Positions 1 to 64,000 of a stretch of DNA of 64,000 nt are shown here, one piece after another. The DNA is from Octopus sinensis (Eukaryota). The notes under the pieces are model-generated. The model was given only the letters and a program-made list of their open reading frames with translations, made no database searches and was not told the origin of the DNA. Position 1 is the stretch's first letter; every line of letters starts with the position of its first letter. Made by a program: the position numbers and the translations under genes. The DNA is taken from the NCBI RefSeq assembly GCF_006345805.1, contig NW_021832223.1, forward strand, positions 1 to 64,000. The letters run 5' to 3'.

Positions 1-145
1 AAAGATTCTGGCCTCGTACGGTGTGCAAAAGTAACCTAACACAATAACATTCAAAATTTTATCTGTTTGCATTGTTTTCATTTGATTTTAAGTTTTGCAT
101 TTTTTAATGTTTTTTGGTATATATAATTTTTTGTGCATTTTTTAA

Positions 146-885: not shown

Positions 886-889
886 TTCT

Positions 890-3602: not shown

Positions 3603-3645
<43 letters not shown>

Positions 3646-4981: not shown

Positions 4982-5001
4982 TAATATCCTCTTTTTGCTC
5001 A

Positions 5002-7614: not shown

Positions 7615-7680
7615 GGCGTCATGTGGTTCACCGTTTCTGGTGGCGTCAGATACAATCTTAAATTGTATCCAAAAGAACCA
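7615..7680 (+). ncRNA. HDV-like double pseudoknot (variant L3)
   Basis: P1 GGCGUC/GGCGUC (two G-U pairs), P2 UGGUUC/GAACCA, P3 ACC/GGU, P4 GAUACAA/UUGUAUC, J4/2 CAAAA. Confidence 0.65.
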
Positions 7681-17646: not shown

Positions 17647-19936
17647 TTTATTATTATTAAAAGCACTTCCGAAAAGTCATAAAACTAATTAAGCTTCCCT
17701 TATGCCGCGTGAACAACAATACTGTCCCACAACCTTCTCCAGGTGCCTCTCCTCTTTGCCAATTCTCTTAGGTTGTCGAGATCATCAGCAGTTTCGAGTT
17801 TCCTCCCAATAATTTTGAGATCCTGATTTAGCACCGATGGAAGTGTTGTCCTTGGTCTTCCTAGGAAATAGCCTCCATCGTGATTTCAGGATTTCGATCG
17901 AGAGAATTTCTGAGTTGCATAATTTGTATAGGTTGTCGTTTGTGATCTTCTGCGGGTAGCGGATGTTGAGTGCTGCACGTAATATATATTGTGCTGTATA
18001 TATTTAAGAATTTCTCCGTCGTCCGACACAAAGTTCAAGTCATCTGCGTAGGATATCTCGTAATAATCATTTTTTATAACTGATTTAAAGTCCCTCAGAG
18101 CGACCTCAAGATACACAATACAAAGCACGGGAGATAGTGAGTCTCCTTGTGGAACACCCCTTGTTGTTTCGAAGTATTTTGATGTCGTCTTTCCGACTTT
18201 AACGGCGAGTTGGATGTTCACTAGGAGAAGGTTTATCATTCTTGTATCGTCTGAATGGAGGAAGCTCTTTAATACTTCCATAAGGAGCCCTCTGTGAATG
18301 GAGTCGAAGGCCCGAATCATGTCTACCCCAAGAATTTCAATACACTTTTTATATTTTTGGCACAGGGCACCAGTCTATCCGTATGTCCAAATTACATCAG
18401 CTGTTGATCTTCCCTTCCTGAATCCACTTTGTCCATGGGATAGAAAACTGTTTACTCGGTCTTTGATTCGGGTCAGTATAATTAGCGATAATGTCTTTCT
18501 CAATGTCGATAGCAGAATAATCGGCCTCAGGTTGCCAGGAGGTCCTCTTGGTCATTTATACAATTTCGTGACTAGAACATGGGCGGTTTCTGATCGTGTT
18601 GCAGTTATGCAGATGAAGTTTGGAGACAAACCTAATTCTATTATATCAATTATCAACATATATGCGCCAACGGGAGCGAGAGTTAACTCCAATCCTGAAG
18701 AGCTGGACGAATTTTATTCCACCCTTATGGAGACATATAACTCCCTGTCGTCATATAAAATTCTTATTGCTGACGATTGGAACGCCAGAGCAGGGAGAGC
18801 CCGGTTTGGAGAGACCTGCATTGGGTCGCATGGGAGAAATCGCAGAAACTCTTGCGGAGAGTCCTTAATTCAATTCTGTTCGGCATTTGACCTATTCATA
18901 TCGAACACCGCCTTCGACCACCGAGCAAGGCATAAAACTACCTGGACAGGAGCAAGAAAAGACAAAAACGGAAACATTTACCCGATTTATAACCAGATTG
19001 ACTACATCATATGCAGAAGAATTATGAAAAACATATTGTCAGATGCGAGATCCTATGATGGCCTTGAAACCAGCAGTGATCATAAACTGGTTGTGACTAG
19101 GATTGTTTTAAAGAGATTACATGGGACAGTTGGCGTACAAAGAACAGGACAAATGGAAACCATCGACACAGAGAAACTTGTTTACGACAAATCAAAGAGA
19201 ATTGAGTACAGTGAAAATCTCAGAAGAGAAATTAATAAAATTGACATAAGCCAGCCTGCAAACATAATATGGACGGAGACTGTTCTTGCAATGAAGAAGA
19301 CGTCATTATCTATTTTGGGACCTGTTCATAAAAGAAAATACCTGCACAATAATTTGGAAATCGAATCTTTTTCGATTGAACAGAAAAGACTCAGACTCGA
19401 ACTAAGCAAAACATTGACGGCAAATAGGAAAAAGGAACTGAAGACACAACGTGGAAGAATATTAAAAAAAATCAAAACAATACAAAAACGTCAATTACGA
19501 AAAGAAGTTGAGGAGCAAGTTGCTGAAATTGAAAAATATAAGGATGGAACGAGGATGTTTCAACCTGTTCGCTTAATAAACAGAGGAAAAAGAACAAACT
19601 ATATTACTGTGCATGATAAACTTGAAAGAACAGTCATTAGTGAACCTGGAAAAACTGCAATCATTTCGGAATATTTCCACGAAATTTTCAATCAAAATAG
19701 CGAAGTCAATGAAATTCGGAACATTCAAGACACTCGAATAATCAGTCCTATTAATATTACAGAAACAATGGATGCCATTAAAAAATTAAACTGCAAAAGG
19801 TCCCCCGGACCAGACAACATTCCTGCAGAGCTTCTCAAATTTGACCAATCGAGCTGGCCGAAGTGATCACACACATACTGAACAAAGCAATCAAAGAAAA
19901 CAAAAACTTAGATATTGGAAAAGGATTGCTAATTCA
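17647..19936. mobile_element. RTE-clade LINE with inverted 5' part
   Basis: APE plus linker lie on + (~18560-19936: INIYAPT, DWNARAG, QIDYI, SSDH, SPGPDNIPAELLK). RT continues on - from ~18550 (GPPGNLRPIILLS, GVPQGDSLSP, YADD). (TAA)n tail near 17650. Confidence 0.85.
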
Positions 19937-25199: not shown

Positions 25200-27490
25200 G
25201 AAAGAAGACCAGGTCAGCACAGCTCAAAAAAAAATCTCGAAGAGATCTTTTTGACAATATAGAATTACCACCTGAAATAATAATTACAAGATGGGGAACC
25301 TGGCTTAGTGCAGCCTTTTACTACTCGAAAAACATGCATACAGTTCGCACTATAGTTTCTGGTCCTGAATTTAACAAAAAAGGGAAAATCTTAGATAAAG
25401 TAAAAACTGCTTTAGATTCAATTAATTTGGAAATAAACCTTGCATTGATAAAATCATGTTATAGTGACATATTAGATGGATTACATCAATGCCAAGAAAC
25501 TTTTTTTACCATTGAGGATGCCGTTAAATTTATTAATGTGATAAATTTTGGGGATGATCCATGTGGAATATCTAAATATTTCCGTAAAAGAATAGATAAA
25601 AATCGATTAAAAGAATTTATACTGCTAAGATTGATAATTGTTCACCAGAAATTTGTTCGATATTATGGAAATGTCCAGCAACAACTATTTCTATTGAAAG
25701 AAGTTTTTCTATGCTTCAAAAGATGTTGGAGAAGGATAGAAACTTTAAAAATGATAACATTAAATATTGTCGTAAGTTATAATGTCTAGGCCCGTTCTAA
25801 GTGTCCGGAGTGATAAATCGGATTTATCACTCCAAATCATGTAAATTCTTTGTTTAAGATCTGAAATTCTTAATGATTACTTTTGTTAATTCAATAATTT
25901 TTTAAATTATTAAAATTTGAAAAAAGTAACTCAGTTAACAAGAATGCGGAAATTAAACAAAGAAATTTTCATCAATCAGGTGATTGAGCGTCATAGTAAC
26001 GAACATAAAATGTAAGTTACTCCATGCGAATTTTTTCTCACAATTAACCTCAATTAATTCAATTCAAATCCTTTAGTTTTATAACTATTTGTTGATTGCT
26101 AAAAAGACTATAAAATATAGATATTGACTAAATCGAAAACCGAAACTAAACATAATTTTTTAAAAGTTAATTTTTTTAATCATTGACTTTGGAATTGTCT
26201 TCCTTTCACCAGATGTGCAATTCTCAACGAGAACGGAATGCAGAGAAACTTCTTCCACTACTAGAAATTGTTCCTTGCTAAAAAAACTAGTGAGTGGATA
26301 TTTTCTTGTTTTTATATTTTTATCGAAATCAATTTTAATTGTAACATTATCTCCAATTGTGATATCTTTTTTTCGAAAATTTTTATTTGCGTCTTCTGTA
26401 ACTTTTCTTTTATACTTTACATTATGAGTTTTTACTTCTAAAGATAATTCCGTTTCTTCCGATTCCGAATTAATCTCTTCTTCTGCGCCTCCACATGGCA
26501 AAATATTAAAACCCGTTATTCCGTAAAATAGACTGGGTAAATAAAAAGAGACTAACCAAAATGGTGACTTTCCAGTTGCGCGATGACAAGTTATGTTGTA
26601 TTTATACACCACCTTCTGTAGAATTCTCTCCACCTTATAGATTCTGTTGCGAACAAAGTCTTCCCCAACCAACGTTTGAGAGTTTGGTTATATCTTTCTA
26701 TTTGTCCTTGAGATTGTGGGTGCCTTGGTCTTCCATATATCGGAGTTATTTTCCAATCATCAAGAAGTTTTGAAACTTCTTTGTTGCGGAATTCCTTTCC
26801 ATTGTCCGAATGAAAATAAATTGGAGGTCCGACAGTCTGGAATAAACTCTCAATTGCATTATAGATGCTTTGTGATGTTTTATTCTCTAACGCGAATGAC
26901 CATGCAAACTTTGTGTATGCATCGATGACAGTAAGTATCCATTTAAAATTGTCATTATTTGCAGAATACCGCCTTAGATCTATACAGTCGGCGATAAATC
27001 TTTCGTATTTTTTTTCCACAGAAATCATTCTGATATTTTCACAAGTACTTAAAGAGTTAAATGATTGGCACGGTATGCATTTTGATACAAAATCACGAAT
27101 TATACATTGTTTAATTCCAATATATTTTTGAGAAATTAGATAACACATTTTATTGAACCCAGGATGTCCTTCATTATGTTCATCACAAAGAATAGAATAA
27201 AATTTATTCCCAAAATCATAATGATTTGGAGTGATAAATCGGATTTATCACTCCGGACACTTAGAACTGGCCCGGACGCTATAACTTACGACAAATATTA
27301 CTTTTCGTTATATTACAATAAATTTGAGTGATTAGTTCTAAATATAAGCCTTATTAAAACTTTATTAATACATAAAAATAAAAATTTATTAGGTCATATT
27401 AAGGGCATATATTTTTTCGTTTAAGGTCATATAAGTCATATTTTATCGGTCATATTTGAAATTTTTTAGGTCATATTTGCGGCTGCCCTA
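25200..27490 (+). mobile_element. hAT-like transposase relic (CGGBP1-related type) split by the Ginger element
   Basis: LPPEIIITRWGTWLSAAFYY. The frame rejoins across the insertion (DNIKY|YFSLYYNKFE*). Right end has GGTCATAT repeats and GCGGCTGCCCTAG. Confidence 0.65.
25768..27293 (-). mobile_element. Ginger2/TDD-like integrase DNA transposon, 1526 bp
   Basis: 73-bp TIRs TGTCGTAAG...CTTACGACA, 5-bp TSD AATAT; H2C2 plus rve core (DCIDL, HSDNGKEF, QGQIERYNQ) in frameshifted ORFs 26591-27148 and 26160-26672. Confidence 0.88.
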
Positions 27491-28840: not shown

Positions 28841-29064
28841 CATTTTCTTATAAAACTCAAAATTCAACAACTAAAATATCACTCAATAAAGCAAACCGGT
28901 TTTTTATTCACACGTAAAAATTTAAATCTTCAAAATTTTAAACGATTAATGAAATTTTTTATAAATAAAAAAAATCATAAATTTAATCAACTCCAAAGAG
29001 TTCAATTCGGGTGAAAAATTGAATGCTATTTGTCAAAAAAAGTTAATATCTGCAATGCATATTG

Positions 29065-29120
29065 CGGTTCACCTGTCGTTGTGGTGGCGCCCAGTGCATA
29101 TTCTGCATGAAAAAGAACCG
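29065..29120 (+). ncRNA. HDV-like pseudoknot variant, 5' strand of P1 missing
   Basis: P2 CGGUUC/GAACCG, P3 ACC/GGU, P1' GGCGCC, P4 GUGCA/UGCAU. Confidence 0.55.
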
Positions 29121-30283
29121 TTCGACCCTCTCCTCCCCCCCACGACTTTGGGAGGGGTGGCCTCCCAATTTCCCCCTCTCTTTTCTACATCTGGCTGGCG
29201 ACGTGGAACCGAATCCGGGGCCCGATTCTCTGGTTATCCTACAACTGAATGTCAATGGAGTCCGAAGTAAAGTCTTGGAGTTACGCTCCCTATTATCTCG
29301 GCTAAAAGTGGACATTGCTCTCATCCAGAAGTCTAAACTCTCTGTCATCCTCAACACCACGGTTCCCCGGCTACACTGTACTGCGAAAAGACCGGACGAG
29401 AAGTCTTGGTGGAGGACTATTGACAATTGTCAAGGATGGGCTTGTGTTGACCGATGTTACTACATTCGTTTCCTCCCTGTGTGAAGACGACCCTATTCTT
29501 GAGCAAATCTCTATAGAAGTTCCTTTCTTACCCTCAAGACATCTTACACTGTGCAATGTATATGTCCCACCGCAGAGCTCGACGACTTCCTTTATCCCAA
29601 AGTACACACCCAACTTATTGAAACTCCGCGGACTGAAGGACCTGCTGCTATGCGGCGACCTAAATGCCAAGCATCCGCTCTGGCTCCGGTCTCAACCGGC
29701 CGACATTCGCGGCGAGTACATCCTTTCCGTACTCAATAAGTTGACTATCCTAAACGACCCATACGCTCATACAAGGACACCAACCCGCAGAAGAGACAGC
29801 CCAACCTCCCCGGACCTGTCTCTCTGCACTCCATCCTTGGCTGGATATATCTCGTAGAATGTTCGTTATGGCTTCTCGAGCGACCATAACCCCATTGTAC
29901 TGACACTTAGAAGGCCTTTCTGTCCAACGCGCCGTCCTACGAAGTTCAAAAATTACTCGAAGGCTAACTGGCATGGTTTCGGGCTGTACGTGGACGACTG
30001 CCTGCTCGATCTCTCTTTGGAAAATTGCACAGTGGAAAAGACGGCCAAGATCCTGTCTACTATCATTTTGCAAGCTGATAAATTATTTATACCTGTCGCT
30101 TCATACAAGAAGTTCAATCCAAGATTATCATCACAAATCCTATCACTTATCAAAGAACGAGATGGCCTGAAGAAAAACAAGTCCAATGACTCATATCATA
30201 CTATACGTTCGTTGAATATCAAAATTTCTGAACTGATCCGGACTAATAACGGACTCGAGTAGAGTCGTCTCGTTGGTCGATTA

Positions 30284-31536: not shown

Positions 31537-34046
31537 GGTATGCGGAAAGAAAGTCAAGCGGAAAAAACGTCAAGTGGAAAAAAAGTCAAGTCCGTAAGCG
31601 GAAAAAAAGTCAAGTGGAAAAAAAGTCAAGTCGTCTTTGTTTACTTTATATTGTATCTTTTTCGCAATAATAGCAACTTTTAATTTTTAACAAATTTTTT
31701 CAATACTTGACTTTTTTTCCGCTTTACTTTTTTTCCATTTTTGAAATTTATTCCCTTATAAATTTTCGAAATTTAGCGCAAAACGGAAAAAAAGTCAAGT
31801 TCGTTAACGAAATTACGGACTGTAATTTCATTTAAATGTTCTGCCACAGCTAAGCAACACGTTGTGAAAATAAATTTTAAAAGCTTGGTTCAGAATATCG
31901 GTTTTTTAAAACTGATATCACTTGCAATTGTATGCGCAAACTTTTTTTCGTTCGCGTTAGCTTCTCGCCTGCCGAAATAGTTCGCTTCCTTTGTTTTATC
32001 TATTCTGTTTCATTTCTTCCGGAAAATAAATCACATAAATTTTACAAAAATTCTTAGAGTAGTCCAGATTTTCTTTATTTTTAAAATTTTTAAATATTTA
32101 AAAAAGATTTTTATTAAACGTGATGAAAGGATTATTTAATTCGAATCAAAAGAATATTTAATATTCCATGCAATTGCTTGTAGGGTTTCTCCTATTGTCT
32201 TTTTTCTGTTTTGGCGATCCAGACATATATTTAGCAGCCTTTGTTGTCGATCGAGTGTACTCTTGTTTTTTCTTGTCGTAATTTTTCTTCCGATGGAATC
32301 CTGGTCAATAATTGTTTTCGTCATTTTTTCTTCTTTTTGAAAAGAAGATATAATATTCCATATCGATGGATGACGATATCCCGTCAAATTGTATAATTTA
32401 TTGTTCCATCCTTCACAATAGTTGTTTGTTCTTTGATCATTATTGAGCGTGGCTTCATACACATTCCATAAAATTGGAGGGAACAATGGAGAAATGTGCT
32501 GTATTCTAACAGATAAAGGGTTTTCTTGTTTATTTAAGCAACGATAATAACCACGAACATATGTTCGATCAAAATAATCTACTATATATTTTGAATCTGG
32601 AACATCTTTTGGTATATTATCTATTAGGAATTCTATTCCTTCTTCCAGATCTTGAATGGGCAAAAACGCAGAGCGTCTATCATAGCGCAAAAAATGTTGA
32701 AGTTAATATTTTCTTTATATTCTTTTACTAAATGCAATTCTTGAATTTTTCTCCAGGTTGACTGCCTTAGATGATAATAACATCCTCTAATATGTATTCG
32801 TCTCCCAAATACTGCAAGGACAGCTCGAAATACCGAATCTTCAAAGTCTGCCATAATAGTTTCAAGACAAAATTCCAAATTCAAATTATGAATTGCATTT
32901 TGAATAGTCTCAAAAATTCTTCGTAAATCTTTCTTGATTTAGAAGGTAATATTCCATAAATAACTGTAATTGGACTGGAATTGAACTCAATTCTGATAAA
33001 ATATATTTGCTTGAATATGCATGGTGCCATAGAGAAATTTCCATCCATACCATACTTTGGAATTTGCCAATAACGTTAAATTAGTATTGGTGCTGAATAT
33101 TAAAAGTCTATCGTTTCTTCTTTGATTATCATAAATTAAAAAGTTTTCTGAATCCGGACCAAGAGTTGAAGTTAAAAATGATGGAATATCTTCTAGATCT
33201 AGAATATTTTTGGAATATGTAGAGACAAGCGTTGATTTCTTATTGTTCGCTTGAAAGAATCTGCAGAAGGGAGAATAATTCTGGATGATGTATCACATTG
33301 AGAAACAACATTTGAATAGATTTGTAAGGGATTCTCTTGGCTCTTTTTTGCAAGAAGTTTTGCCTTGTTGCACAACTTCGTCAGTTTTATTTGAGTTTCG
33401 TCTAATTCGTGATTGTGAGAGGTTCCTTCTTAGGAAACTCAAAGTTATGATCTGTTCTTAAGCTTCCTCTGCATCCTTGCGAAGACTTTTTACACAATTA
33501 AAAATTATATAATTTTTTGTTGTCGAGTGCCTTGTATACATATAACCTTTGAAACAAATTTTTTTTCCTCCTTTGTTAGATGATATTATCTCCATTTTGT
33601 CACTTATTTTTGCGGCATCCATAATATTTAAGATACAATATGCATAATATTTAAGATCAAGGCGTAAGATTAAGCAAATAAGTCAGGCCACTTTTATTAT
33701 TACTTTGAAGTTCTTAAATTGATTTAGGAAAAGCGATTATTTTAAGACGGAAAATAAGTCAAGTTCGTTAACGAAATTACGGACTTGACTTTTTTTCCGT
33801 TTTGCGCTAAATTTCGAAAATTTATAAGGGAATAAATTTCAAAAATGGAAAAAAAGTAAAGCGGAAAAAAAGTCAAGTATTGAAAAAAATTGTTAAAAAT
33901 TAAAAGTTGCTATTATTGCGAAAAAGATACAATATAAAGTAAACAAAGACGACTTGACTTTTTTTCCACTTGACTTTTTTTCCGCTTACGGACTTGACTT
34001 TTTTTCCACTTGACGTTTTTTCCGCTTGACTTTCTTTCCTACAATC
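31537..34046 (-). mobile_element. Mutator (FLYWCH-MULE) element with ~257-bp repeat-rich TIRs
   Basis: TIR arms 31544-31800 and 33783-34039; 8-bp TSD GTTTCCGG. Confidence 0.88.
32136..33622 (-). pseudogene. FLYWCH/MULE transposase, frameshifted
   Basis: KICFKGYMY, YMDGNF, MADFE, IRGCYYHLRQSTW, RTNNYCEGWNNK. Confidence 0.88.
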
Positions 34047-35032: not shown

Positions 35033-35108
35033 TGCGTCATGTGGTTCACCAGTTGCTGCAGCTCTGGAGGCGCACAGAATGCTCCTAAAGCATTCGAGAA
35101 AAGAACCA
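35033..35108 (+). ncRNA. HDV-like pseudoknot variant with expanded L3
   Basis: P1 UGCGUC/GGCGCA, P2 UGGUUC/GAACCA, P4 GAAUGC/GCAUUC, ~15-nt L3. Confidence 0.55.
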
Positions 35109-36563
35109 TTCACTCTTCCCAGCTGGAATTATCCAGACGACAATCCCGGGATCTCAGCCCCCGATAGACGAAAGGCTTGAGCATTCTGCTTCCGGGCGAT
35201 GTTGAGGAGAATCCAGGACCACATCTAACCATACTCCAACTGAACATCAATGGAATAAGAGGGAAAGTTTTTGAATTACGAACATACCTTAAAAAACACA
35301 ACATCGATGTAGCTGCCTTACAAGAAACCAGATTAACACCCTCCTCATTTACCCCCTCATTCCCGGGATATAACTGTATCCGCTTAGATCGGTTAAACCG
35401 ACTTGGCGGAGGCCTTCTGTTTATTATCAAATACGTTTTGCAATATACAGACTCCACGGATGACCTCAAGGCAACAATTCAGGACGGCGTATCAGAAATA
35501 TCTGGAATTATGTTGAATACTAAATTTGGAAAGACCGCTATTCTTAACATATATGTTTCACCCCCTCCGTCTTGTCCAAAGGGATTCAATCCAAACTTCT
35601 CAAAGCTATCCAATTTAAAGAACCTTTTAATTTGCGGAGACTTGAACGCAAAGCATCCGACTTGCCTTAAATCCCAACGGGCAGACTCAAGAGGATGGTC
35701 TCTATTGAAACAACTCTCTGCCATGTCTTTCCTTAACAATCCGAAGACCCACACTAGGACACCTTATAAGGATACCAAACGCTTAACATCTCCGGACATT
35801 GCACTATCTTCAACTAACTTATCCTCAGCCATTTAATGGACAGTAGACTACGATCTTAATTCAGATCACAATCCAATCATCATCGTGATCAAAAAAGCTC
35901 TTCCTCGTACGAACAAAGCTATGTCCTTTTTCAATTACAAGAACGCAAACTGGGAGGGATATGCTAACTTCACCGACGCAACGGGAGTGTATTTCTGAAT
36001 GGAATCAAATCAATCTCAAGATTACTTCTAAATGGAGTTCCCCAAACTGTTCAAATCAATCGACGGAGCTGTCAAGTACCTAAATGAGGCGATCTTGCTG
36101 GGTAGAAAACTATTTATCCCAAAATGCACTTACCATCACTTTGAAGAAAATCTCGACCAGGAGACAAAAATCCTTATCAGGAAAAGAAACTTTCTTAAAA
36201 AGAATCTAATTTCTATTCCCGGATGAAGAAAAGAAATAAAGAACCTAAATGATACAATCACTAAGAAATTGAAAGCATCCCAAAGAAGATGGGAAAAACA
36301 AATCAAAACGCTTGGAAAGGAAAAATCTGCCCAACGCATATGGAACGCTCTCAAAAAGTTCAGACCCGGCAAGTATTGCATAGACTCAGAACAGAAAAGT
36401 CAACCTGAATTGAGTAAACTCATGAAATTCTACGCCGGAATCAGCCACAAGAATCATTTGAAGATAAACTCATATTATGTAAACAATAAACCAAAAAAAT
36501 CAAACTCACCCACCTATATATCCCCTCAGGAGCTTCGCAAAACAACTAAGTTCTCCAAGCACT

Positions 36564-36705
36564 GTACCATCTTAGTCCTAAATACCCGCTTAGTCGTAAA
36601 TACCCGTTCCCATCCGAACGCGGCAGTTAAGCGATTACAGGCTGTTTTAGTACTTGGCTAGGTGACCGCCTGGGAACAAACAGTGTCGGTACGATCATAC
36701 TTAGT
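36564..36705 (+). rRNA. 5S rRNA-derived copy (rearranged, probably a pseudogene)
   Basis: AATACCCGTTCCCATCCGAAC...AGTTAAGC...TAGTACTTGG...GTGACCGCCTGGGAA. Helix II UAGUCG/CGAUUA. Partial 5' duplication, and a new 5S start GTACGATCATACTTAGT overlaps the 3' end. Confidence 0.8.
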
Positions 36706-39282: not shown

Positions 39283-39479
39283 ACCCGATGTTTATTTGCA
39301 AGATGCGTAGTAGGTTCTTCTTGGCAGGTTCAGGATTTTGTTCAATGCTTCCGGAAAAGAGAGAGGCAAATTTGGCGTATAAAAGAAAGATGGGTGGGAG
39401 CAATGGCATTGCGCCTGCTTCGGTGTCACCAACATCACGGAAGATAGGATCTGACAAAGAGTAGTTGTGGGTCTTTTGG
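39283..39479 (-). mobile_element. 5' fragment of Vingi-like family B with degenerate 2A
   Basis: CCAAAAGACCCACAAC (J4/2-P2'), SGSIEQNPEP, KKNLLRILQINI. Confidence 0.8.
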
Positions 39480-39521
39480 TAGTTTTGATTTTAGTTTTTA
39501 CTAAGATAATGTAAAAATTAA

Positions 39522-40190: not shown

Positions 40191-40404
40191 GATCGAGGGA
40201 TGCGCGAAATTTGAAAGAAAATTAAAATTGATATGAAAGAGAATTAGAATAGATGTGAAAGTAAATTGAAAAAATAAAAAATTAGAGAACAAAAACAACA
40301 ACGTTCAACAGCGTACAGAAAATTTTATAGCTTTTGGTAGTTAATCTGACGTAAATTTTCATTTGTCAACATGAAAGGGTGAAGGACATAGACAAATAAA
40401 TAAC

Positions 40405-40497
40405 GTACGACACTGTTTGTTCCCAGGCGGTCACCCAGCCAAGTACTAGAATAGCCTGTAATCGCTTAACTGCCGTGTTCAGATGGGAACGGGTATT
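40405..40497 (-). rRNA. 5'-truncated 5S rRNA copy
   Basis: Very similar to the 36564 copy; ends GTGTCGTAC; no T4 terminator. Confidence 0.8.
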
Positions 40498-40559
40498 AGT
40501 CGTCAAGAGACAAAAGTCGTGGAAGGATACAATGATGTTTACGGAAAATATTAAATAAT

Positions 40560-46080: not shown

Positions 46081-47631
46081 CTAAGAGAGCCAAGATTTAA
46101 TTATATTGATCGCCTGATTCCTTGCAGATTTCAGACTTATGCTGTCAAAAGATGGTGACGACTTCCTCAAGTCAGATTGATGAACAGCTCCGGAGATTTC
46201 AATGACAGTAATCCCCTCGTTAGTCGTGTTATGATAGCATCCTCCATTAAAGGGGTCAAATTCTCCATTGGTGAATATAATATTCGTAAATGAAGACAAA
46301 TCATTAATATTCGTATTCATAATATTGAATTTCCATTTTGGAATTACATTAAAATTATCCCAACAGGTCTGCTCTATGTTATCAACATCAAAATCCATTT
46401 CAGGAAACATGTTGTTTGAACTTTGTCGCGAACATAGATAAAAAGGCATTTCAGTGCAAAACTAAAATGTTCTTTCATTTAAAAAACCTGGAAATGTTTC
46501 TCAGTTGAAAACGAAGAGTCAAATATATTGGTTATGTTAATACATTCCGTTTGGCTATCATTTTGAAAATAAAATTTAAGAGTATTATATAAGGCTGAGA
46601 CCAATTCATCTCTTTTCATGTTTGGAGCTGAGAAAAATTCTGAGATTTTCTAAAAATTTTTAGCACAAACAATACATCAAGTGGGCGGGCTGGTAAATTC
46701 TTTAAAAGTGTTGAAGGAGTTTCGTAGTTAGCCATTGCCGCCACTGAAAACACATCTTGTATATTCCAATAGGCCATTGAAAAATCATGAAGATCGCAAA
46801 TTTTAAGTTTACGAAGTGTATTGTGTTGATATTCTAAACTATGTTGACTTAGATCAGACTGAGGTAATCAATTTTGACGAGTTTAAGGACATTTTTAATA
46901 TTTTCGACCGAGTTTGGATTTGCTTTTCGAAAAGCCTTTGTGGTGATTTCATAGGGAGAACTACAGTCAGCGTATCCGTTGAACATCATAATAGGAGCAG
47001 ATGAGGCAAAAGCGCTATTTTAGATTACAGGGTCAACCCAGTTATTTTTGCGGGATATTTCATCCTCATTTGAACTGCCAAGATCCCTGCATATCCTCCG
47101 CCAATGGTTATGACCTTCTCGTCAGGAAATAATTCATAAATCAATCCAATGTAGTCTTCAATTGCTTGTTGAGATGACAAATAGGGAAATGGTTTATTCT
47201 AAACATTATAATTGTGTTTAACATGATGGGTATTCTTTGGGATTGACTCGCCGTAATATCGATGTTCAGCAAATATGATAAATGCGTTTAATTCAGCTGC
47301 AGCATTCCATACAAATTCCTATTTAAATAAATGGAACAAAGGACTAGGTTCTCTGCAAATTTTTCAATTCGGTCTTCGTGTCCGGGATAAAAAAGGACTG
47401 GACCGCCTGGTTTATGATACTTTGAAGAATATATGTATTTCATAGAGAATTCATCCATGTTGTAGGGATCAAAGTGATCGACCTGCAATCTGAAATACAA
47501 TTTGTTACTTGTGTATTGAACCATTCAATATGATAGTTTTCTACTTGTTTCGAATCGACCTTTTTGATTTTGATGCTAATTTCAGATGCCACTTGGTGAC
47601 ACAATAATATATAGGGCAAAAAGAATTTCAT
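46081..47631 (-). CDS. Peptidase S28 (prolylcarboxypeptidase/DPP7-like) homologue, 8 exons, nucleophile Ser replaced by Gly
   Basis: Signal-like N-terminus, QVDHF, FAEHRYYGES, YLSSQQAIEDY, GGGYAG, FASSAP, CTEM, NGEFDPF, GAVHQSDLR; seven introns of 23-26 nt. Confidence 0.88.
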
Positions 47632-47766
47632 TTTAATATTTATAATCCTTTATTTAAATATCACAATTTAGGCAGCCAACGTAAAATTAAAAAAATCATA
47701 TTTAATAAGATACATTATAAATAACAATTTTCCAAGTATTTCCAATATAATCCACTCCAAATCTTA

Positions 47767-50700
47767 GAGTACAAGGTCGTCTGTCGTTGTGGGTCACCTT
47801 CTCGCGGTGGTAGATGATAGTTTTATACTTCGAAAAGACCCACAACTACTCCCCTGTCGGATCGGATCGATTCCGCGACGTCGGTGGCAGCAGAGCAGGC
47901 GCAAAGCCGTTGCTCCCAAGGAGCTCTTTGCTTATCAAACTCACCCTTTTTCTTTCCGGAGACATTGAACCAAATCCTGGCCCCAGTAAGAAGAACCTAT
48001 TGCGTATCTTGCAGATCAACATCAATGGGATTGCTCAGAAGACTGCTGAACTTTATTCCTTCCTGGAGAAGCACGACGTGGACATTGCTTTGGTGCAAGA
48101 AACGAAGCTCTCGGCCAAAAATCGCTTGCCAGATTTCCCTGGCTATTCTTACATCCGTCGGGACAGACCGGGCTCTGTAAATGGGGGTGGCCTACTAACT
48201 CTTATCAAAAAAATCCATCCCGTTCACTAACTGTACCTCCCAAGCTTACTCGCTAACATACCTCCTCACTCGTCATGTCCTCATGGATGGACCCCTTCTA
48301 TTCAAAACCTCCAGTCCCTCAACAATGTCATTATTTGTGGTAATATGAACGCAAAGAGCCCGATATGGCTAAAAAATCAATCTCTCAACTCAAGAGGATC
48401 TCTACTATTCGACCAAGTTGATGGTTTAGTTATCCTCAACAATCCCTCATCTCACACCAGAACACCGTCAAGGAAAGGCGACGCAATTTCTTCTCCTGAC
48501 ATCTCTCTATGTACCCCAATTCTGGCCCCTGTTACTTCTTGGAAGGTCATTTACGACCTAAATTCCGATCACAACCCGAATTATTATTGAGAATGCCCTA
48601 AAATCCAACATCGACATTCAACGGCGTTGTTATACGAATTACAAAAGAGCTTCCTGGGACGACTATTGCCTCGCTTTAGAAAAATCATTGAATGATTTCG
48701 ACATTATCAACTTTCGTTCGACTGACGCAGCAGTCAATTATGCACTTATCATCTCCACCTCCAAAAAATTCATTCCTCAAGGAATTATACAAAATTTCTC
48801 CCAAAGTTACAGCCACGAAGTAAACGCCCTTACAAACTGAAACGGGAAAATGGACAATCTGCTGTGTCCTTTATAGAACTGAGGAATCTAAACAAACAAA
48901 TCACTGCTGCCATAAATCGGCATATTGACTCGAAGTGGAGTCAATTTATTGCTTCTATTGATTACAGATCCAATTCCTCCAAAATTTGGTCAACCCTTAA
49001 GGGGATGAATGAACTGATGTTCGAAAAGGCAAAATCGCATGAGTCTGTTGTTTCTCGTCCCCACTTAATCCGGTTCAATTACATTTCATTAAGTCACAAA
49101 ACATCTAACAAAAACGACCGGAAAGTAACCAAATCTCTTAGAAGACTTCCCGTCAAAGATTCTATACCGACTTTCACTGCGGAGGAAGTCTCGCAATGCA
49201 TTAAAAACTCCAAAAACTCCCCTGCAACTGGCCCTGACAACATTTCAATCTATCATCTCAAAAGACTAGGCCCTAATGCTATCAAAGCAATAGTCTCTAT
49301 TTTCAACAATTCTGTTGCGAAAAACGAAATACCGTCCCTCTGGTAGAAATCATGTATCATTCCATTGATCAAACCAAACAAACCGGCTGGCATTCCAAGT
49401 TCCTACCGCCCAATCTCTCTTCTGTGCACGCTAGCTAAAATCATTGAAAGACTAATCCTTGCCCGAATATCCATACATTTGCCAACTTCCCATACTCAAA
49501 ATGGTTTTAAACCACGGCACTCAACAACTACTCACTAAACAATACTTTCGCTATCTGTGCTGGACGGCTTCAATAAGAAGAGACCCCCAAAACGAACAGT
49601 ACTAGTTTCAATCGATGTCTCAAAGGCGTTTGACAGCGTCCCTCGATATGGACTCAGCAACAAAATTTTAAAAACAGACCTAACTAAACTCAAACTTCAA
49701 ATCCTGGCTTGCAAACTTCTTATCGGGTCGAATGGGATACGTCTCCCTTATGGACCACTGTTCAAAATAACGCTATCTTCCAAATGGGGTACGCAGGGTT
49801 CTGTGTTGTCCCCTTCCCTGTTCAACTTATATTTACATGACTTTCCAGCTAATGACCCAAACAACTTGACATTATCTTACGCAGATGACATTATCATTGC
49901 TTCTAAACACGCAGATTACATATCAGCCTCTCTCAACATCCAGCAACAATTATACTCAGTTGAGAATTGGTTCATTGAAAACAGACTCGAGGCTTCGCCC
50001 TCGAAATCATCGGTCACCTTATTGTCTTCCGACAGAAGACAATCAAACCTTCACATGAAGTTATCTCCCTTTGGTTCTGACCTCCCACTATGCAAAAACC
50101 CTACTATCCTCGGACTTACTTTTGATCCAACTATGTTCTTCAACAAGCATGTCTCTAACATTTCTGACAAGGCAAAAAGACGCACAAACATACTAAAAGC
50201 AATAAGTGGTCACATTACAGGCGCCCAGAAGCCACTCCTCAAACGAGTTTACAAACAATACATACGGCCCGTATTAAGTTATGCGAGTCCAAGCTGGGCG
50301 CCCTGTCTATCCATAAACTCGACAATGGCACTTCAATCAGTACAAAACAAGGCCATTCGCACAATTTAAATCAACCCCAATTGATAACCTCCACTGTGAA
50401 ACAAACCTTTTTCCAATTGAAGATCATCTAAATATGAGAGGAGCGCAATTTTTATTTGCATCTCGAATTGCCTATCATCCATGTTCTGCTCTAAATGTGC
50501 CAAACGGAAATTTTCGTTCAGTGAAGAACACGCCGGCGAATCTATATTTCCGGATCCTTGCTAAAATTGATGGCCTGCGCCAATGTCCATATCCAATGAA
50601 GAGAATTCACGATTCGATATCTACGTCAGCTATTTTTAAGCTGACGCCTAACTCCGTACTCAATAAACCTCCTTCTGACGTTCACTGTTCTGAATTGCTT

Positions 50701-50992
50701 CTCGACCGTTCGGCTCAGACAAACTTGCTCATTTCCGTTCTGGTCATCACTCCTCATTAAACCACTATGCGCACAAAATGGACATCTCGATCTCCCCCTT
50801 TTGTCCCATTTGCCATGCTGACGAGCACACAACCGCCCATCTATTCCGCTGTCCTGGTCTTCTTTCGCTCCGTAAAAAATTTGCCATTCACTCCCCGGAG
50901 GTCCTATGGGACCAACCTGGAGGGAGCTGTTGTTTCTGCAAGCTGCTGGTCTCATAACTTAATGTGAGATCGGGGGTTATGCAACAACAACA
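47767..50992 (+). mobile_element. Near-full-length Vingi-like LINE, family B (frameshifted)
   Basis: TSD ACTCC(A/C)AATCTTA, 12/13 match (47754-47766, 50993-51005); ribozyme; 2A LFLSGDIEPNPGP (47946-47984); APE; RT; C-terminal CPIC...H...C motif; (CAA)n tail. Confidence 0.92.
47779..47846 (+). ncRNA. HDV-like self-cleaving ribozyme candidate
   Basis: P1 GUCUGUC/GGUAGAU with G1-U, P2 10-bp perfect, P3 ACC/GGU, L3 UUCUCGC, P1.1 UC/GA, short P4, J4/2 UCGAAAA. Confidence 0.85.
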
Positions 50993-51029
50993 ACTCCCAA
51001 TCTTATTCTCAATGTAATCCATCATTTGG

Positions 51030-56722: not shown

Positions 56723-59700
56723 CTAGCTCAGCAGTTCGCTTCGCTCACTGCGAGCTAGCTCCTGCGGAGGCCCTGCTCGCTACGCTCGCAGTTCCTTCTT
56801 AAATAAGTATAAATTTATGTAGATATATAATGCGACCTGCTTTGATATAACCTTATTCTAAGGCCTGTGGATAAACGATGTTTGCAGTCCGTCCATCCTT
56901 GGCAAATATAATAAATTTTCTCTTCTACCTACCCTTGAGCACCCCACATACAGCTGGCCATGTGAAAAGCACTCGTTCTCTAAAAATAAGCCTACTACCT
57001 TTAAAGACTGTCCCTGGGCCTTGTTTATTGTCATAGCAAAATTATCTTCAGCGGAAATTGTAGTCTCTTAAATCTAAAAGGTAATTCTTCCGAAATCAGA
57101 GGTATTCGTGGGATATAAACATCCTCACCTCTGTAATTACCTGTTAATATTGTCGCTTCTATTACGTTAGCCATCAAATTCTTGATAACCAACCTTGTAC
57201 CATTGCATAATTTAGGTGGCGCAAGATTGCGGAGTAACACAACCGGTACACCTATTTTTAATTTCAATAGATGATTCGGCATTCCAGATGGATCTAAGGA
57301 ATTTAAAAATTCTACAGGATATTCGCAGGCCCTTTCATGGTCCATAATAACGTCGACCGATTTATATATTCTTTCTCTGCCAGGGATTTTCATTAATAAA
57401 TCTAAATTTATATTAAGTACCTCATCATTAAGTGGAGCTAATATAGCTCGTTCACGCAGCCAGTCGAAATTCACGTAGTGTTCAGATAGTTCGGAATAGA
57501 CGGCATTCAATAATTCTTCTGCTGTTTCTACGAAAATACATAATTCTTCCGGTAGCCTAATTTTCTGGTCTTGCATTTCTGAAGTGATTGCCCATTTCCA
57601 ATATCTAGAAGGATTTGTGGGAATATGCTATTAACGCCTTGTAAATGTGCACGTACATTACATCTAAGCTTACCTTTTTCACGTGTGTCCACAAATATGA
57701 CGATTTGAGGCAGGCATTCAATTCATCCGCAGGCGTCCCTCTTTGAATAATTGGCAGCGTCTGTCTAAAATCACCTGCCAATACAACTATTGCTCCCCCA
57801 AATAAATGGTCGCTACAATTCTTGATATCTCTATATGTTCGATCAACTGCTTCGAATGCGCCTTTATGAGCCATCGTACATTCATCCCAAACAATTAACT
57901 AGAATGCATAATTCTATTACCCGTAGTTGATTTTTTTTTTACATTACAAACCGGTTCAGTAGTATATGAGAGATTCAACGGAATGTTGAATGTCGAATGT
58001 GCGGTTCGACCGCCATCTAAAAGAGTTGCAGCAATTCCAGAAGATGCAACTGCTAAAGCTAGTTTATTTTCGCTTCTGACCTTAGCTAATAATAGATTTA
58101 GAAGATAGGTCTTACCTGTTCCACCCGGTGCATCAATAAAAATGATAGAACCGTTTTCTTCTTGGATGACTCGATTAATTTCTCTGTATACCTCCAACTG
58201 GCCAGTGGTTAAGCTTTGTTCTCTTTCTTCCACTATTGTTCGAAGTTCTTCTAAATTATAATGCTCATCAAATGAATTAATATTATGAATATCGCTGATT
58301 ATAAAACCAAATTCACCTACACTCTTACCAACGATAGATATTAGCAATCTATCTATCATGATTAATCCAATGTTGAAAATCTCTGCATCGAAACTCAATC
58401 TATTCTTCTCTCTTAATATATCTTCACACATGCTTTCTCGGTGACCTTCCCACAGTTGTTGTGGATTTGCTAACCCACAATGGGCTAGCATCAAAGTAAA
58501 TAAATACCTTAGTCGCGATGGGGAATCTGCAAGTTCAGCTTCTGTTAAAGTCTGATTCCAGTGATTATCATCCTCTAAAAGACCTAATTTAAAACAGGCT
58601 TCTCTGTATGTTTCGCAGAGTACTCCATCTACAGTCCGTAGATCAGTGAAAGATTCTGGCCCTCGTACGGTGTGCAAAAGTAACCTAACACAATAACATT
58701 CAAAATTTTATCTGTTTGCATTGTTTTCATTTGATTTTAAGTTTTGCATTTTTTAATGTTTTTTGGTATATTAATTTTTTTGTGCATTTTTTAAGTCGAG
58801 GACTTTCTTGTTGTTCATTTTAACAAAAACGCAGAAAATAATTTTGTTTAATTTTTTGGCTCGAAGGTTTTGGGGGACCACACCATGTGAGTCGAAGACT
58901 TTCTTATTGTTCATTTTAACAAAAACGCAGAAAATAATTGTTTTAATTTTTTGACTTGAAGGTTTTGGGGGACCTCATCATCGAGGATATTCTTTCTTAT
59001 TAAAATTTTTTGACAGGAAGGTTCTTAGAGGATATCAACCTTTTATTGTGCCTCATTATCGAATAACTACAAAAGGGAAGGTTTTGACAATTTGATCTGG
59101 TTTGTAACAATTTGAATGTGGGTGTGCACAGACAGACAGACAGACACACAGACAGACACACACCATACCATTTTATTATTAAGAGCTCGAAGGTTTTGGG
59201 GGACCACACCATGTGAGTCGAGGACTTTCTTATTGTTCATTTTAACAAAAACGCAGAAAATAATTTGTTTTTAATTTTTTGACTTGAAGGTTTTGGGGGA
59301 CCTCATCGTCGAGGATATTCTTTCTTATTAAAATTTTTTGACAGGAAGGTTCTTAGAGGAATATCAACCTTTTATTGTGCCTCATTATCGAATAACTACA
59401 AAAGGGAAGGTTTTGACAATTTGATCTGGTTGGTAACATTTGAATGTGGGTGTGCACAGACAGACAGACAGACACACAGACAGACAGACAGACACACACC
59501 ATACCATTTTATTATTTTAAGATTTCTATTGTTGTTTTTTTCTTTTTATAGTGTTTTATTTTTCTCTTTGGATTTTTCGATTTTATATCATTTTTTTAAT
59601 TTTTTTTTAATTTTTCTTTAATTTTTTCTATTTTTCTTTATTATTTTTTATTTTTGTTTAATTTTTTTAATTTTTTTTAATTTTGTTTATTTTTCTTTAT

Positions 59701-61816
59701 TATTTTTATTTTTGTTTAATTTTGTTTAATTTTTCTTTATCATTTTGTATTTTTTTAAATTTTTAAATTTTTCTTTATATTTTCTTATTATTCTTTATTT
59801 TTCTTTAAATTTTCTTTAATTTTTTTTGTATTTCTTTAATTTTTTTTCTTTATTTTTTATTTTTTTTCTTTATTTTTTTATTTTTTTAATTTTCATCATT
59901 TTTTTGATTTGTATTTCTTTATTTTTCTTTAAATTTTCTTTAATTTTTTTTGTATTTCTTTAATTTTTTTTCTTTATTTTTTTATTTTTTTTCTTATTTT
60001 TTTTTTTATTTTTTAATTTTCATCATTTTTTTAATTTGTATTTTTTATTTTTCTTTAAATTTTCTTTAATTTTTTGTATTTCTTTAATTTTTTTTCATAA
60101 TTTTTTTTATTTTTTTAATTTTCATCATTTTTTTGATTTGTATTTTCTTCTATTTTTGTAGGGGGGATGGGGGGGAGTATTTTTGATTTTTGAGCTTAAA
60201 AAACAAAATAAATTAGAATCAACAGTCACATAACACACCACGAGTAGTTATTTAACAGATTTAAGAACGATAAGATAGATAATTAAAACAGGCATACCCA
60301 AATAAATTTAAAGTTAACGCAAAAACAGAAATAAATAGTTAATATTTCTACGCGTTTTCGCATAAATGTCTTGTCAATAGATAATCAATTATGTAAATCT
60401 TTATTAAAATTTGCTTTTTACTTTTAATTTAAAGATTAGCATACTTGAGGTTGTCAGTTTCGGCGATTAAAAAGATAATAAGCCACTTTTTTGAGATATT
60501 ATAAGGAAAGATTTGAATAAAGGTAAATGTAATTTAGATGACTAATTTGAATTTTAATTGGCTCTATCTTTTAAGGCATTTAAACATTAGCATTATAGAC
60601 CTTGTTAAATTGCATAAATTCATTATTAAATTCTAAATTATTTGACTGGAAGGGATTATATATTTAATTGGTATGCAATTCTATTCAGATTGCCTCTTTT
60701 GGCTGGAAGGGATTATATATTAAATTTGCTATGCAATTCTATTCAAATTGCCTCTAACATAAACAGGCCTTAAAGCTTTTTTTAAATTGAACATGTAAAT
60801 TTTGGCGATCGAAAAACAGTAATTAGCTTCATCTTTTGTGTATTATAAGGAAGAAGAGTACAGATAGTCAATTCAAGGTAATTTATAAATGGCAATTTGT
60901 AATTTAGATGTCTAATATGAACGAATATCATTAAAAAAATATTTTAGAAAAAATACGTATTAAATTTTTAAGTACAAAATTGGTTTTCTTTATTGTTGTT
61001 CATTTTTTTTATCTGTTTGCATTGTTTTCATTTGATTTTAAGTTTTGCATTTTTTAATGTTTTTTGGTATATATAATTTTTGTGCATTTTTTAGTCGAGG
61101 ACTTTCTTGTTGTTCATTTTAACAAAAACGCAGAAAATAATTTTGTTTAATTTTTTGGCTCGAAGGTTTTGGGGGACCACACCATGTGAGTCGAGGACTT
61201 TCTTATTGTTCATTTTAACAAAAACGCAGAAAATAATTGTTTTTAATTTTTTGACTTGAAGGTTTTGGGGGACCTCATCATCGAGGATATTCTTTCTTAT
61301 TAAAATTTTTTGACAGGAAGGTTCTTAGAGGATATCAACCTTTTATTGTGCCTCATTATCGAATAACTACAAAAGGGAAGGTTTTGACAATTTGATCTGG
61401 TTTGTAACAATTTGAATGTGGGTGTGCACAGACAGACAGACAGACACCACAGACAGACACACATACCATTTTATTATTAAGAGCTCGAAGGTTTTGGGGG
61501 ACCACACCATGTGAGTCGAGGACTTTCTTATTGTTCATTTTAACAAAAACGCAGAAAATAATTTGTTTTTAATTTTTGACTTGAAGGTTTTGGGGGACCT
61601 CATCGTCGAGGATATTCTTTCTTATTAAAATTTTTTGACAGGAAGGTTCTTAGAGGATATCAACCTTTTATTGTGCCTCATTATCGAATAACTACAAAAG
61701 GGAGGTTTTGACAATTTGATCTGGTTTGTAACAATTTGAATGTGGGTGTGCACAGACAGACAGACAGACACACAGACAGACAGACAGACACACACCATAC
61801 CATTTTATTATTAAGA
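56723..61816 (-). mobile_element. Internally deleted Helitron, 5094 bp
   Basis: 5' A|TC at 61816, 3' CTAG|T at 56723, hairpin 56731-56751; PIF1-type helicase ([40 protein letters not shown]). Confidence 0.9.
56850..58700 (-). pseudogene. Helitron RepHel C-terminal helicase, frameshifted
   Basis: ORFs 57895-58677, 57605-57874 and 57031-57576, followed by QLYVGCSRV near 56940. Confidence 0.9.
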
Positions 61817-62237
61817 TGTCACATGGGTGATCAGACCCCTATGGGCAACCTGGCCTTTACGTGTTTCCATGGCAACTACATAGCAAATATTACTAAAAGG
61901 CCAACACCATTCAAAAACTAAATGATCTCTTCTGCTGTTTCTCCAGGTTCTGCAGCAGATGCTGCAGAGCAAAGAAAAATTGCAAATACGCAAACCTTGG
62001 ACAACGGTACGCTTCGTACCTATCGCTGTGGAGACTTCTGGAATAACCGGCCCTCTTACGACTTCTTTCATCAGAGAAGTCGGAGAAAATGTGTGCTAGG
62101 CGACGTGGGGAGCCTCGAGAAGTGTCATGGTTATTCCAACAAATTGGAATAGCTGTCGTTCGCGGCAATGCACACTCCATCATGCGTGCAACCGCAAGTG
62201 CCTTTTAATCATTGTCTAACTTATTTCAAATCTTCAC

Positions 62238-62280
<43 letters not shown>

Positions 62281-64000
62281 CAACTAATATAAAGACAAAC
62301 GATGCGAACTAATGATTGAACTTTAAATTTTTGAGAAAATGATGTTTTATATTTGAACCATGCTTGCTTTAAAATAGTAAAATTATTTTACAACATTAGC
62401 AAATTATAATGTGAATTATTTTTATTTTTGATAATATAAATTGCAACATTAGCAAATTATAATTTACATCAAATTTTTTGCAAAGTTTGTAACAACTTTA
62501 ACTCTAACCTTAACCCAAACCCTAACGTTGGCAAATGAAAACATAAACATATTCAAAATCTGAATCCTAACCTTAACCCAAACCCTAACGTTGGCAAATG
62601 ACAACATAAATATATTCAAAATCTGAACCCTAACCTTAACCCTAACGTTGGCAAGTGACAACATAAATTTATTCAAAATCTGAACCCTAACCTTAACCCA
62701 AACCCTAACGTAACCCTAACTCGAAATTAAATGATGTTTCTGCTGACGATTCTTCAGACATTTTTGACAAAAATTGGAAGCTTTTTTGGCCAACCGGTGT
62801 TTGCTTCGAGCATTCATATCCTCCGGGAATATACCGATTAACGTTTCCTTAATTTGATTGTATTCGTTAATATTTCTGACGTAACCCTTAAACCCAGACA
62901 TCACAAAGTGTGAGAGACCACGCTGTTAAAATTAATATACTTTTGGGTAAGCCATTTTTAAAAGATAATTCAAATGTAATTTTTAATTAGAATAATTGAT
63001 TAATCTACACTCTTCCATATATAAATTGCTATATTCAATATTTAATACCTTTTCTGCGGTTTCCATAGAAACACGTAAAAGGACTGGCTGCCCATAGCGA
63101 CATAGTCGCCCATGTGACATAATTTTAACAGCGTGGTCTCTCACACTTTGTGATGTCTGGGTTTAAGGGTTACGTCAGAAATATTAACGAATACAATCAA
63201 ATTAAGGAAACGTTAATCGGTATATTCCCGGAGGATATGAATGCTCGAAGCAAACACCGGTTGGCCAAAAAAGCTTCCAATTTTTGTCAAAAAGTCTGAA
63301 GAATCGTCAGCAGAAACATCATTTAATTCGAGTTAGGGTTACGTTAGGGTTTGGGTTAAGGTTAGGGTTCAGATTTTGAATGTCCAAGGCCAGGTTGCCC
63401 ATAGGGGTCTGATCACCCATGTGACAAATTAATATACTTTTGGGTAAGCCATTTTTAAAAGATAATTCAAATGTAATTTTTAATTAGAATAATTGATTAA
63501 TCTACACTCTTCCATATATAAATTGCTATATTCAATATTTAATACCTTTTCTGCGGTTTCCATAGAAACACGTAAAAGGACTGGCTGCCCATAGCGACAT
63601 AGTCGCCCATGTGACATAATATCCTCTTTTTGCTCACTACACATCACTATGATCAGTCTCTTCTACATACACTTGCCCACTCCTCGAAACCTCCGAATGT
63701 TCATCTGAACTCCACTGGTATGATCCAAATGACGCCTTCTTCGCGAAACATTTCTCTCCAATCAAACCCTTCCTCTTGGACGAGTTGAGATGGATAGGCT
63801 GACTGACGAACAGACATTTTTCAGCCAACAGATCAGCCTCCTCGCAGACCGGAATGACCACTTCCATTCTCCGACGTAGAAAACTCCATTCACTTTTACT
63901 AAGTGACTCTCCTCCCACTTCACTCGTTGTGATCTCCTTGGCGTAGTCCACTCGGTCAGTTTGGGAGGCACAGTCTCTGGTGTGCGAGGAATTTCCAAAA
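58649..64000. repeat. Second copy of the 5.36-kb repeat
   Basis: Colinear with 1-5364. Confidence 0.97.
61817..63616. mobile_element. TGT...ACA fold-back element (copy of 3180-4981), containing CRE insert 61906-62277
   Basis: TSD TAATA at 56718-56722 and 63617-63621. Confidence 0.8.

Follow-up and report, generated by a model that had tools for sequence, protein, structure and literature searches.

The DNA considered here is a 64,000-nucleotide (nt) stretch of Octopus sinensis contig NW_021832223.1 (assembly GCF_006345805.1), referred to as the window. A single-open-reading-frame (single-ORF) long interspersed nuclear element (LINE), with an apurinic/apyrimidinic endonuclease (APE) and a reverse transcriptase (RT), occupies positions 47767-50992 of its plus strand, and the head of this element carries a candidate ribozyme of the hepatitis delta virus (HDV)-like type, a short leader and a 2A (StopGo) motif. 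The order of ribozyme, leader, 2A and endonuclease is shared by six LINE heads, namely the target copy, three others in the window (C_7, D_35 and E_29) and two loci labelled 'Octopus sinensis'. The fold is credible because the six heads show compensatory changes in the helices P1, P2 and P4. Judging from these sequences, it is likely that a genuine HDV-like ribozyme cuts the LINE RNA back to its own 5' end, and that this step is coupled to initiation of translation on or within the ribozyme and to the release, through the 2A, of the leader that the ribozyme encodes.

Anatomy of the head and of the LINE copy

Direct reading of the sequence allows all the elements of an HDV-like nested double pseudoknot to be placed at 47779-47846 (+), in the strand order P1-P2-P3-L3-P3'-P1'-P1.1-P4-J4/2-P2', which is also that of the five related heads. 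The assignment of every HDV element made in the original prediction was therefore reproduced, C47831 of J4/2 included:

47779-47846 (+), HDV-like ribozyme candidate, based on direct reading, a descriptor match and covariation with the five related heads
47779-47785 (GTCTGTC) with 47809-47815 (GGTAGAT) (+), P1, 7 bp, of which three are G-U pairs, including G47779-U47815
47786-47795 (GTTGTGGGTC) with 47837-47846 (GACCCACAAC) (+), P2, 10 Watson-Crick bp
47796-47798 (ACC) with 47806-47808 (GGT) (+), P3
47799-47805 (TTCTCGC) (+), L3, 7 nt, closed by P3
G47816 and A47817 with C47801 and T47800 (+), P1.1, pairing possible
47819-47821 (AGT) with 47827-47829 (ACT) (+), P4, minimal
47830-47836 (+), J4/2, with the putative catalytic C47831 followed by GAAAA

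The cleavage site is predicted to lie 5' of G47779. RNAfold calculations, which do not consider pseudoknots, recovered P2 in the target (-22.4 kcal/mol, z = -3.0), with a competing helix filling the interior.

The LINE is bounded by a 13-bp target-site duplication (TSD), and a match of such quality was found in 1.3% of shuffles. As had been claimed, the TSD puts the 5' end of the element (47767) 12 nt before G47779; an internal source for this extension was sought in the window and no meaningful match was found there. The parts of the copy outside the ribozyme are as follows:

47754-47766 (+), 5' copy of the TSD, ACTCCAAATCTTA, 12 of 13 bases identical to 50993-51005
47767-47778 (+), 5' extension, GAGTACAAGGTC, 12 nt from the TSD to the predicted cleavage site
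47814-47957 (+), leader frame of the target, from ATG 47814 to the 2A, with TAG 47811 in frame before the ATG
47958-47984 (+), 2A/StopGo motif GDIEPNPGP, with skipping predicted between Gly 47979-47981 and Pro 47982-47984
47985-50992 (+), decayed LINE body, from Pfam, three-frame translation with many stops and 3'-end comparison
47814-48227 and 48345-48587 (+), endonuclease pieces (Pfam)
49557-50366 (+), RVT_1, the RT domain (Pfam)
near 50769-50909 (+), weak CCHC/zf-RVT match near the C-terminus (Pfam)
50993-51005 (+), 3' copy of the TSD, ACTCCCAATCTTA, with one mismatch to 47754-47766

The 2A motif, which conforms to the GD(V/I)ExNPGP definition of PMC3708506 and is preceded by a Leu-rich tract (LLIKLTLFLS), lies approximately 110 nt downstream of the ribozyme. 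It is in frame with ATG 47814-47816 and directly adjoins the Exo_endo_phos domain detected by Pfam, which bears out the proposed fusion of DIEPNPGP to the APE. The activity of 2A sequences is context-dependent and must be assayed (PMC3708506). The 3' end of the element (...GAGATCGG with a short GGGTTATG(CAA)n-like tail) was set by reference to the 3' fragment of a family member at 27858-25094 (-). Many stops disrupt the ORF and the endonuclease is incomplete; the target copy is a decayed pseudogene, a dead relic.

Related heads and compensatory changes

Within the window the same core was found only at the heads of 2A-APE LINEs (at 7615, 29055, 35033 and 47779), which belong to related but diverged families. 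The heads other than the target, together with a truncated fragment that also carries a 2A directly upstream of the endonuclease, as do C_7, D_35 and E_29, are:

7615-7793 (+), LINE head C_7, with the ribozyme at 7615-7681, full fold, a 7-bp P4 and ATG 7621-7623 in J1/2-P2
35033-35221 (+), LINE head D_35, with the ribozyme at 35033-35109, full fold, an enlarged L3 and a 7-bp P4
29055-29223 (+), LINE head E_29, decayed, with P2, P3 and P4 kept and P1 lost, and the 2A DVEPNPGP at 29200-29223
39287-39483 (-), LINE fragment B_39, of the target's family (74% identity to 47827-48023), 5'-truncated and starting in J4/2

The 2A of C_7 (DVEQNPGP, 7770-7793) is separated from its ATG by a frameshift. 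In D_35, ATG 35039 is in frame with the 2A (DVEENPGP, 35198-35221) with one intervening stop, and B_39 retains a degenerate 2A (GSIEQNPEP). The putative catalytic position of the E_29 ribozyme (29055-29121) is a T, in a CG-to-TG context suggestive of CpG decay by transition. A 261-bp stretch on the 3' side of E_29 (31544-31804) recurs inverted at 34039-33779, 2 kb away, with 99% identity.

The best database relative is the protein P0001 (annotated as Octopus sinensis LOC115229065), which begins with MWFTFSGG... and carries GDVEQNPGP. Its locus (Osin1, on contig VCDQ01001009.1) contains the same nucleotide core, and the second head (Osin2) was found on the opposite strand of the enlarged locus L021 of the same contig. 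A second protein search, with P0001 as the query, returned only three matches and no further heads. No TSD of at least 8 nt was found for C_7, D_35 and Osin1, the 5-7-nt candidate of C_7, AATCG(GG), being not significant. Pfam detected no RNase H domain, one of the features by which the L1Tc/ingi clade would be recognized: the C_7 ORF (542 amino acids) gave RVT_1 only, and the C-terminal ORFs of D_35 and of the target nothing beyond the weak zf-RVT.

For the analysis of covariation, pairs were counted on A4, an alignment of the helix strands extracted from the six heads; MAFFT alignments of the raw heads (A2 and A3) misalign L3 and P4 and were left out of the counts. Standard pairs fill 89.7% of the cells of A4 versus 78.3% on shuffling, a value reached by none of 500 shuffles. 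Changes on both sides are found in 9 of 21 pairs (4.6 when shuffled, with 1 of 500 reaching the observed count), and the covariation score is 0.419 versus 0.177 (0 of 500). Pairing was only 29-51% in slid registers, but the shuffle control was judged more meaningful for A4.

P1 varies between families yet remains paired (GTCTGTC/GGTAGAT, GGCGTC/GGCGTC, TGCGTC/GGCGCA and GATCGTC/GACGATT). The columns in which both partners changed are three in P1 and two in P2, where, for example, U-A is replaced by C-G in E_29 and by G-C in the target; conservation is seen in P3 and in the inner portion of P2. C_7, D_35 and Osin2 each form P4 as a 7-bp hairpin, with unrelated sequences, and all columns of this helix are compensatory. 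A C is located 6-8 nt before P2' in five of the six heads, the exception being E_29 with its T.

Chance was further controlled with descriptors. The strict HDV-type descriptor, for which 0.125 matches are expected per dinucleotide-shuffled window, matched at 47779, at 7615 and in the three copies of a single AT-rich satellite unit; this descriptor replaced a loose version that was uninformative, with approximately 90 matches per window. Strict D[VI]ExNPGP motifs numbered 4 in the window versus 0 in 200 shuffles. On this sequence evidence, the fold is not due to chance and its helices are backed by covariation. It might still be argued that the likeness is fortuitous, and that nucleotides were conserved through coding constraint on the leader (MWFT..SGG..K-R/E-T) or simply through recent common ancestry, given that the region is coding in the relatives, that the loose descriptor matches so often and that three of the sequences in this small sample are close to each other in the core. 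However, coding constraint does not predict double compensatory changes in three helices, pairing between strands of the same sequence exceeds that across sequences, and the hairpin of P4 is retained although the peptides that it encodes are wholly different. The third codon positions of the P2-P3 strand are, moreover, invariant, and the strict descriptor matched two LINE heads against the small expected number. A chance likeness is therefore considered very unlikely.

The search for such heads was extended to unrelated 2A-APE LINE contigs of ENA metagenomes (marine in the case of L027 and L002) with a loose descriptor, the false-positive rate of which is sizeable, so that the candidates are leads only. 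L027 contains a good HDV-like candidate at 101-177, with a P1 and a P4 of 7 bp each, 54 nt upstream of ATG 231; L002 contains a plausible one at 213-283, with P1 and P2 of 6 bp and TTTACGC as L3. The candidate in L026 is weak, and L022-L025 gave none. A metagenome scan with GGTTCACC..GGTGGCG..AAARAACC yielded 17 matches, all of them chance matches in bacterial contigs with a high guanine plus cytosine (GC) content.

Leader frame, 5' ends and proposed pathway

Both 'Octopus sinensis' heads, C_7 and D_35 carry an ATG in J1/2-P2, 5-7 nt past the predicted cleavage site. The frame that it opens (MWFT...) runs through P2, P3, L3, P1', P4 and J4/2 on to the 2A, and is intact in P0001 and L021. Thus, as read from these frames, the candidate ribozyme of the relatives itself encodes a leader peptide. 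The N-terminus lies 57 amino acids from the 2A in the target (ATG 47814 to the 2A proline), 59 in P0001 and 64 in L021, so that the motif is placed as in other LINE-type 2As, namely in frame, 40-80 amino acids from the N-terminus and upstream of the APE. C_7, D_35 and both 'Octopus sinensis' heads share exactly the same P2-P3 strand, GTGGTTCACC, even at third codon positions, although the overall identity of C_7 and Osin1 is only 64-68%, which points to a constraint at the RNA level.

In the target, the codon homologous to the ATG of the relatives is TTG 47787, and TAG 47811, within P1', interrupts the frame. Transition decay of a stronger P1 may account for this stop and for the three G-U pairs in the helix. 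The original prediction had taken ATG 47814 as the start codon and proposed that folding and initiation compete. The position of this ATG in the P1' and P1.1 strands, in frame with the 2A, was confirmed, but the idea of competition had to be revised, since four relatives start in J1/2-P2; ATG 47814 is probably secondary, and the conflict probably a trait of the decayed copy. In the lineage of the target the ribosome must unwind the whole ribozyme, a stronger point than was then supposed.

The 5' ends of copies also bear on the predicted cleavage. The homology between C_7 and Osin1 starts within 2-3 nt of the predicted +1. In Osin2, a 16-nt partial duplicate of its own P2-P3-L3 (GGTTCACCTTCTCGTG) abuts the +1 G of a head that is otherwise intact (L021, 3174-3159 and 3147-3132, minus strand), and looks as if cDNA synthesis had reached a cleaved 5' end and then jumped template. 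Both features favour cleavage where it is predicted. For the target copy alone, its 12-nt extension is evidence to the contrary; it may derive from an uncleaved template or from nucleotides added at the 5' junction.

Indeed, the TSD-defined 12 nt upstream of the predicted site, which are unexpected for a cleaved template RNA, are one of several observations that weigh against a functional ribozyme. A4 was built from the proposed helix strands and leans towards the structure; it includes six sequences only, of which C_7, D_35 and Osin1 are closely related in the core. The helices are also imperfect: P1 has only 5 bp in Osin1, P3 contains an A-A mismatch in D_35 and Osin2, and P4 is of only 3 bp in the target. 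Only two of five heads (target and Osin2) have a G-U wobble at the cleavage site, where C_7 has G-C and D_35 has U-A. The sum of P1, P3 and P4 in the target is -2.3 kcal/mol, versus -22.4 kcal/mol for the competing nested fold. By taking into account the corresponding values of C_7 (-11.8 kcal/mol) and of the second L021 head (-13.7 kcal/mol), the target copy would be expected to cleave poorly, if at all.

Finally, no HDV-type covariance model of Rfam (15) matches any of the six heads. The Infernal scan that had been suggested as a check was run as Rfam cmscan on the whole window at the gathering threshold, and on short stretches and related loci at E<=5-10. It returned no ribozyme family for the target, C_7, L021, L027, L002 or L026; the only matches were to 5S ribosomal RNA (rRNA) and chance ones of the small nucleolar RNA type.

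These observations leave room for a conserved 5' structure that shares only the topology of HDV-like ribozymes and acts without self-cleavage, be it as a platform similar to an internal ribosome entry site (IRES), as a site bound by the protein of the element itself or as a Pr77-like internal promoter, at the RNA or DNA level. Covariation shows that a structure is conserved, not that it is catalytic, and the lack of Rfam ribozyme matches and the 12 nt retained by the target would agree with such a function, as would the start codon inside the structure, expected of an initiation platform. There are also precedents, since the first 77 nt of L1Tc are both promoter and ribozyme, and HDV-like ribozymes have been proposed to be IRESs (PMC3383444, PMC6765202). 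However, the signatures of the catalytic core are present (a 3-bp P3, an L3 of 6-7 nt with which P1.1 can form, and, immediately preceding P2', a C with purines after it), and homology between families begins at the predicted +1. Cleavage and non-cleavage functions are, furthermore, not exclusive. Thus, a structure devoid of self-cleavage is regarded as unlikely.

Returning to a self-cleaving ribozyme, we infer a pathway in which self-cleavage, cap-independent initiation and ribosome skipping are combined. The LINE would be transcribed within a longer or read-through transcript, in which the double pseudoknot would fold and cleave 5' of G47779. The cleaved RNA, with a 5'-OH, would begin with the ribozyme, and a full-length cDNA would regenerate it. 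Translation would then initiate without a cap, on or in the ribozyme, at an AUG that in the relatives lies just downstream of the cleavage site. The ribosome would read P2, P3, L3, P1', P4 and J4/2 into a leader of 55-65 amino acids, the first 23 or so codons of which would be dictated by RNA structure, and the 2A would free this leader, so that the endonuclease-RT protein would start at the 2A proline.

Host lineage, known systems and the rest of the window

The target LINE is arranged head to head, at a distance of 135 bp, with a host gene, divergent transcription from which could feed the LINE:

46087-47631 (-), prolylcarboxypeptidase-like (S28 peptidase) gene, read from 47631 to 46087, with exon gaps of roughly 6-70 nt (micro-introns)

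Its best homologue, P0074, is labelled Octopus sinensis, and the same gene has introns of 23-68 nt at that locus (L020, VCDQ01001777.1, 10001-12775); no other mollusc is found among the top matches. VCDQ01001777.1 and VCDQ01001009.1 (L001/L021), of assembly GCA_006345805.1, contain the closest relatives of the host gene and of the LINE, and have a GC content of 37-38%. Dicyema japonicum, a parasite of O. sinensis, has a genome with 36.7% GC, 49% repeats, numerous copies of LINE ORF2 and introns of 38 bp on average (PMC6736024). The window probably derives from a dicyemid, and the two contigs are probably dicyemid DNA assembled and annotated as octopus.

The closest known parallel in head architecture is L1Tc of Trypanosoma cruzi. 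That this element combines a 5' HDV-like ribozyme with a 2A, as the original prediction noted, is stated in PMC3185411 (legend to Fig. 1) and PMC3708506, and also in PMC3383444. According to these sources and PMC4035085, the 5' end of L1Tc/NARTc contains the ribozyme L1TcRz within Pr77, the first 77 nt, followed by a short peptide, the 2A and the APE. The likeness lies in a single-ORF APE-RT LINE with an HDV-like ribozyme (here, a candidate) at the extreme 5' end, and in a short leader followed by a 2A upstream of the endonuclease (DIEQNPGP in L1Tc, DVEQNPGP or DIEPNPGP here). In contrast, the L1Tc ribozyme is described as part of the 5' untranslated region and as doubling as an internal promoter, whereas the start codon of the relatives described here is inside the ribozyme; L1Tc contains RNase H and C2H2 domains, none of which was found here; and the host is a metazoan with micro-introns rather than a kinetoplastid. 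Of the earlier claim that the same system operates in a micro-intron animal, the micro-introns and the association of a ribozyme-type fold with a 2A stand; that it operates could not be upheld for the target, with its broken ORF and weak P1.

R2, RTE and baggins elements are also headed by HDV-like ribozymes (Eickbush & Eickbush 2010; Ruminski et al. 2011, as cited in PMC6765202 and PMC3774820). In these elements the ribozyme frees the LINE RNA from a co-transcript and has been proposed to support cap-independent translation; unlike the elements considered here, no 2A appears in them, and R2 is site-specific with a restriction-enzyme-like endonuclease. Conversely, metazoan single-ORF LINEs with active 2As are known, such as Ingi-1_AC of Aplysia and CR1, L2, Rex1 and Crack elements (Odon et al. 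2013, PMC3708506). As in the present heads, the GD(V/I)ExNPGP motif is 40-80 amino acids from the N-terminus, sometimes directly upstream of the APE, with no ORF1. The difference is that an RNA element upstream of the 2A was not considered: the word 'ribozyme' is absent from PMC3708506 and from the later 2A surveys PMC3894237, PMC12338488 and PMC13405545, and a full-text literature search found no paper joining the terms HDV-like, 2A peptide and retrotransposon. Non-LTR (long terminal repeat) retrotransposons of Schistosoma mansoni carry twister-variant ribozymes (PMC8501958), a further case of self-cleaving ribozymes tied to LINEs of a parasitic spiralian, of a different ribozyme class and with no 2A.

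The type of system was thus already known; novelty lies in the host lineage, in a start codon within the ribozyme and in sequences that are invisible to Rfam. If cleavage and skipping are true, the L1Tc type of head would extend beyond kinetoplastids to LINEs of a spiralian parasite, and HDV-like ribozymes missed by the current Rfam models would be added to those known. A reason for the N-terminal 2A of single-ORF LINEs, left open by the 2A literature, could also be proposed, namely removal of the ribozyme-encoded leader; PMC3708506 proposes only dosage control. We tentatively suggest that this 2A exists because the first 20-25 or so codons are at the same time a ribozyme or initiation structure, and that StopGo discards the RNA-dictated leader so that the endonuclease-RT starts cleanly. 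Were this rather doubtful generalization correct, ribozyme-2A coupling would be general (L1Tc, dicyemid-type LINEs and possibly L027 and L002) and no trypanosome peculiarity.

As for the rest of the window, its ends (1-5364 and 58649-64000) are 99.3% identical over approximately 5.36 kb, which could reflect a segmental duplication or an assembly or circularization artefact with a period of approximately 58.65 kb. The end block contains an AT-rich tandem satellite (approximately 145-3179 and 58794-61816). The remainder is largely transposon debris, the ORFs of which resemble, by eye, the following:

10528-11302, pogo/Tigger-type DDE transposase
13564-16527, two-ORF LINE with a zinc-knuckle ORF1 and no ribozyme match
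18298-19866, another APE-RT element
26591-27148 (-), retroviral-type integrase
57031-58677 (-), PIF1-like (Helitron-type) helicase

The two 5S rRNA matches returned by Rfam are 93.7% identical to each other:

36589-36684 (+), partial 5S rRNA (model positions 14-109), inside the LINE copy D_35
40402-40517 (-), full-length 5S rRNA, approximately 900 nt upstream, on the same strand, of the LINE fragment 39483-39287

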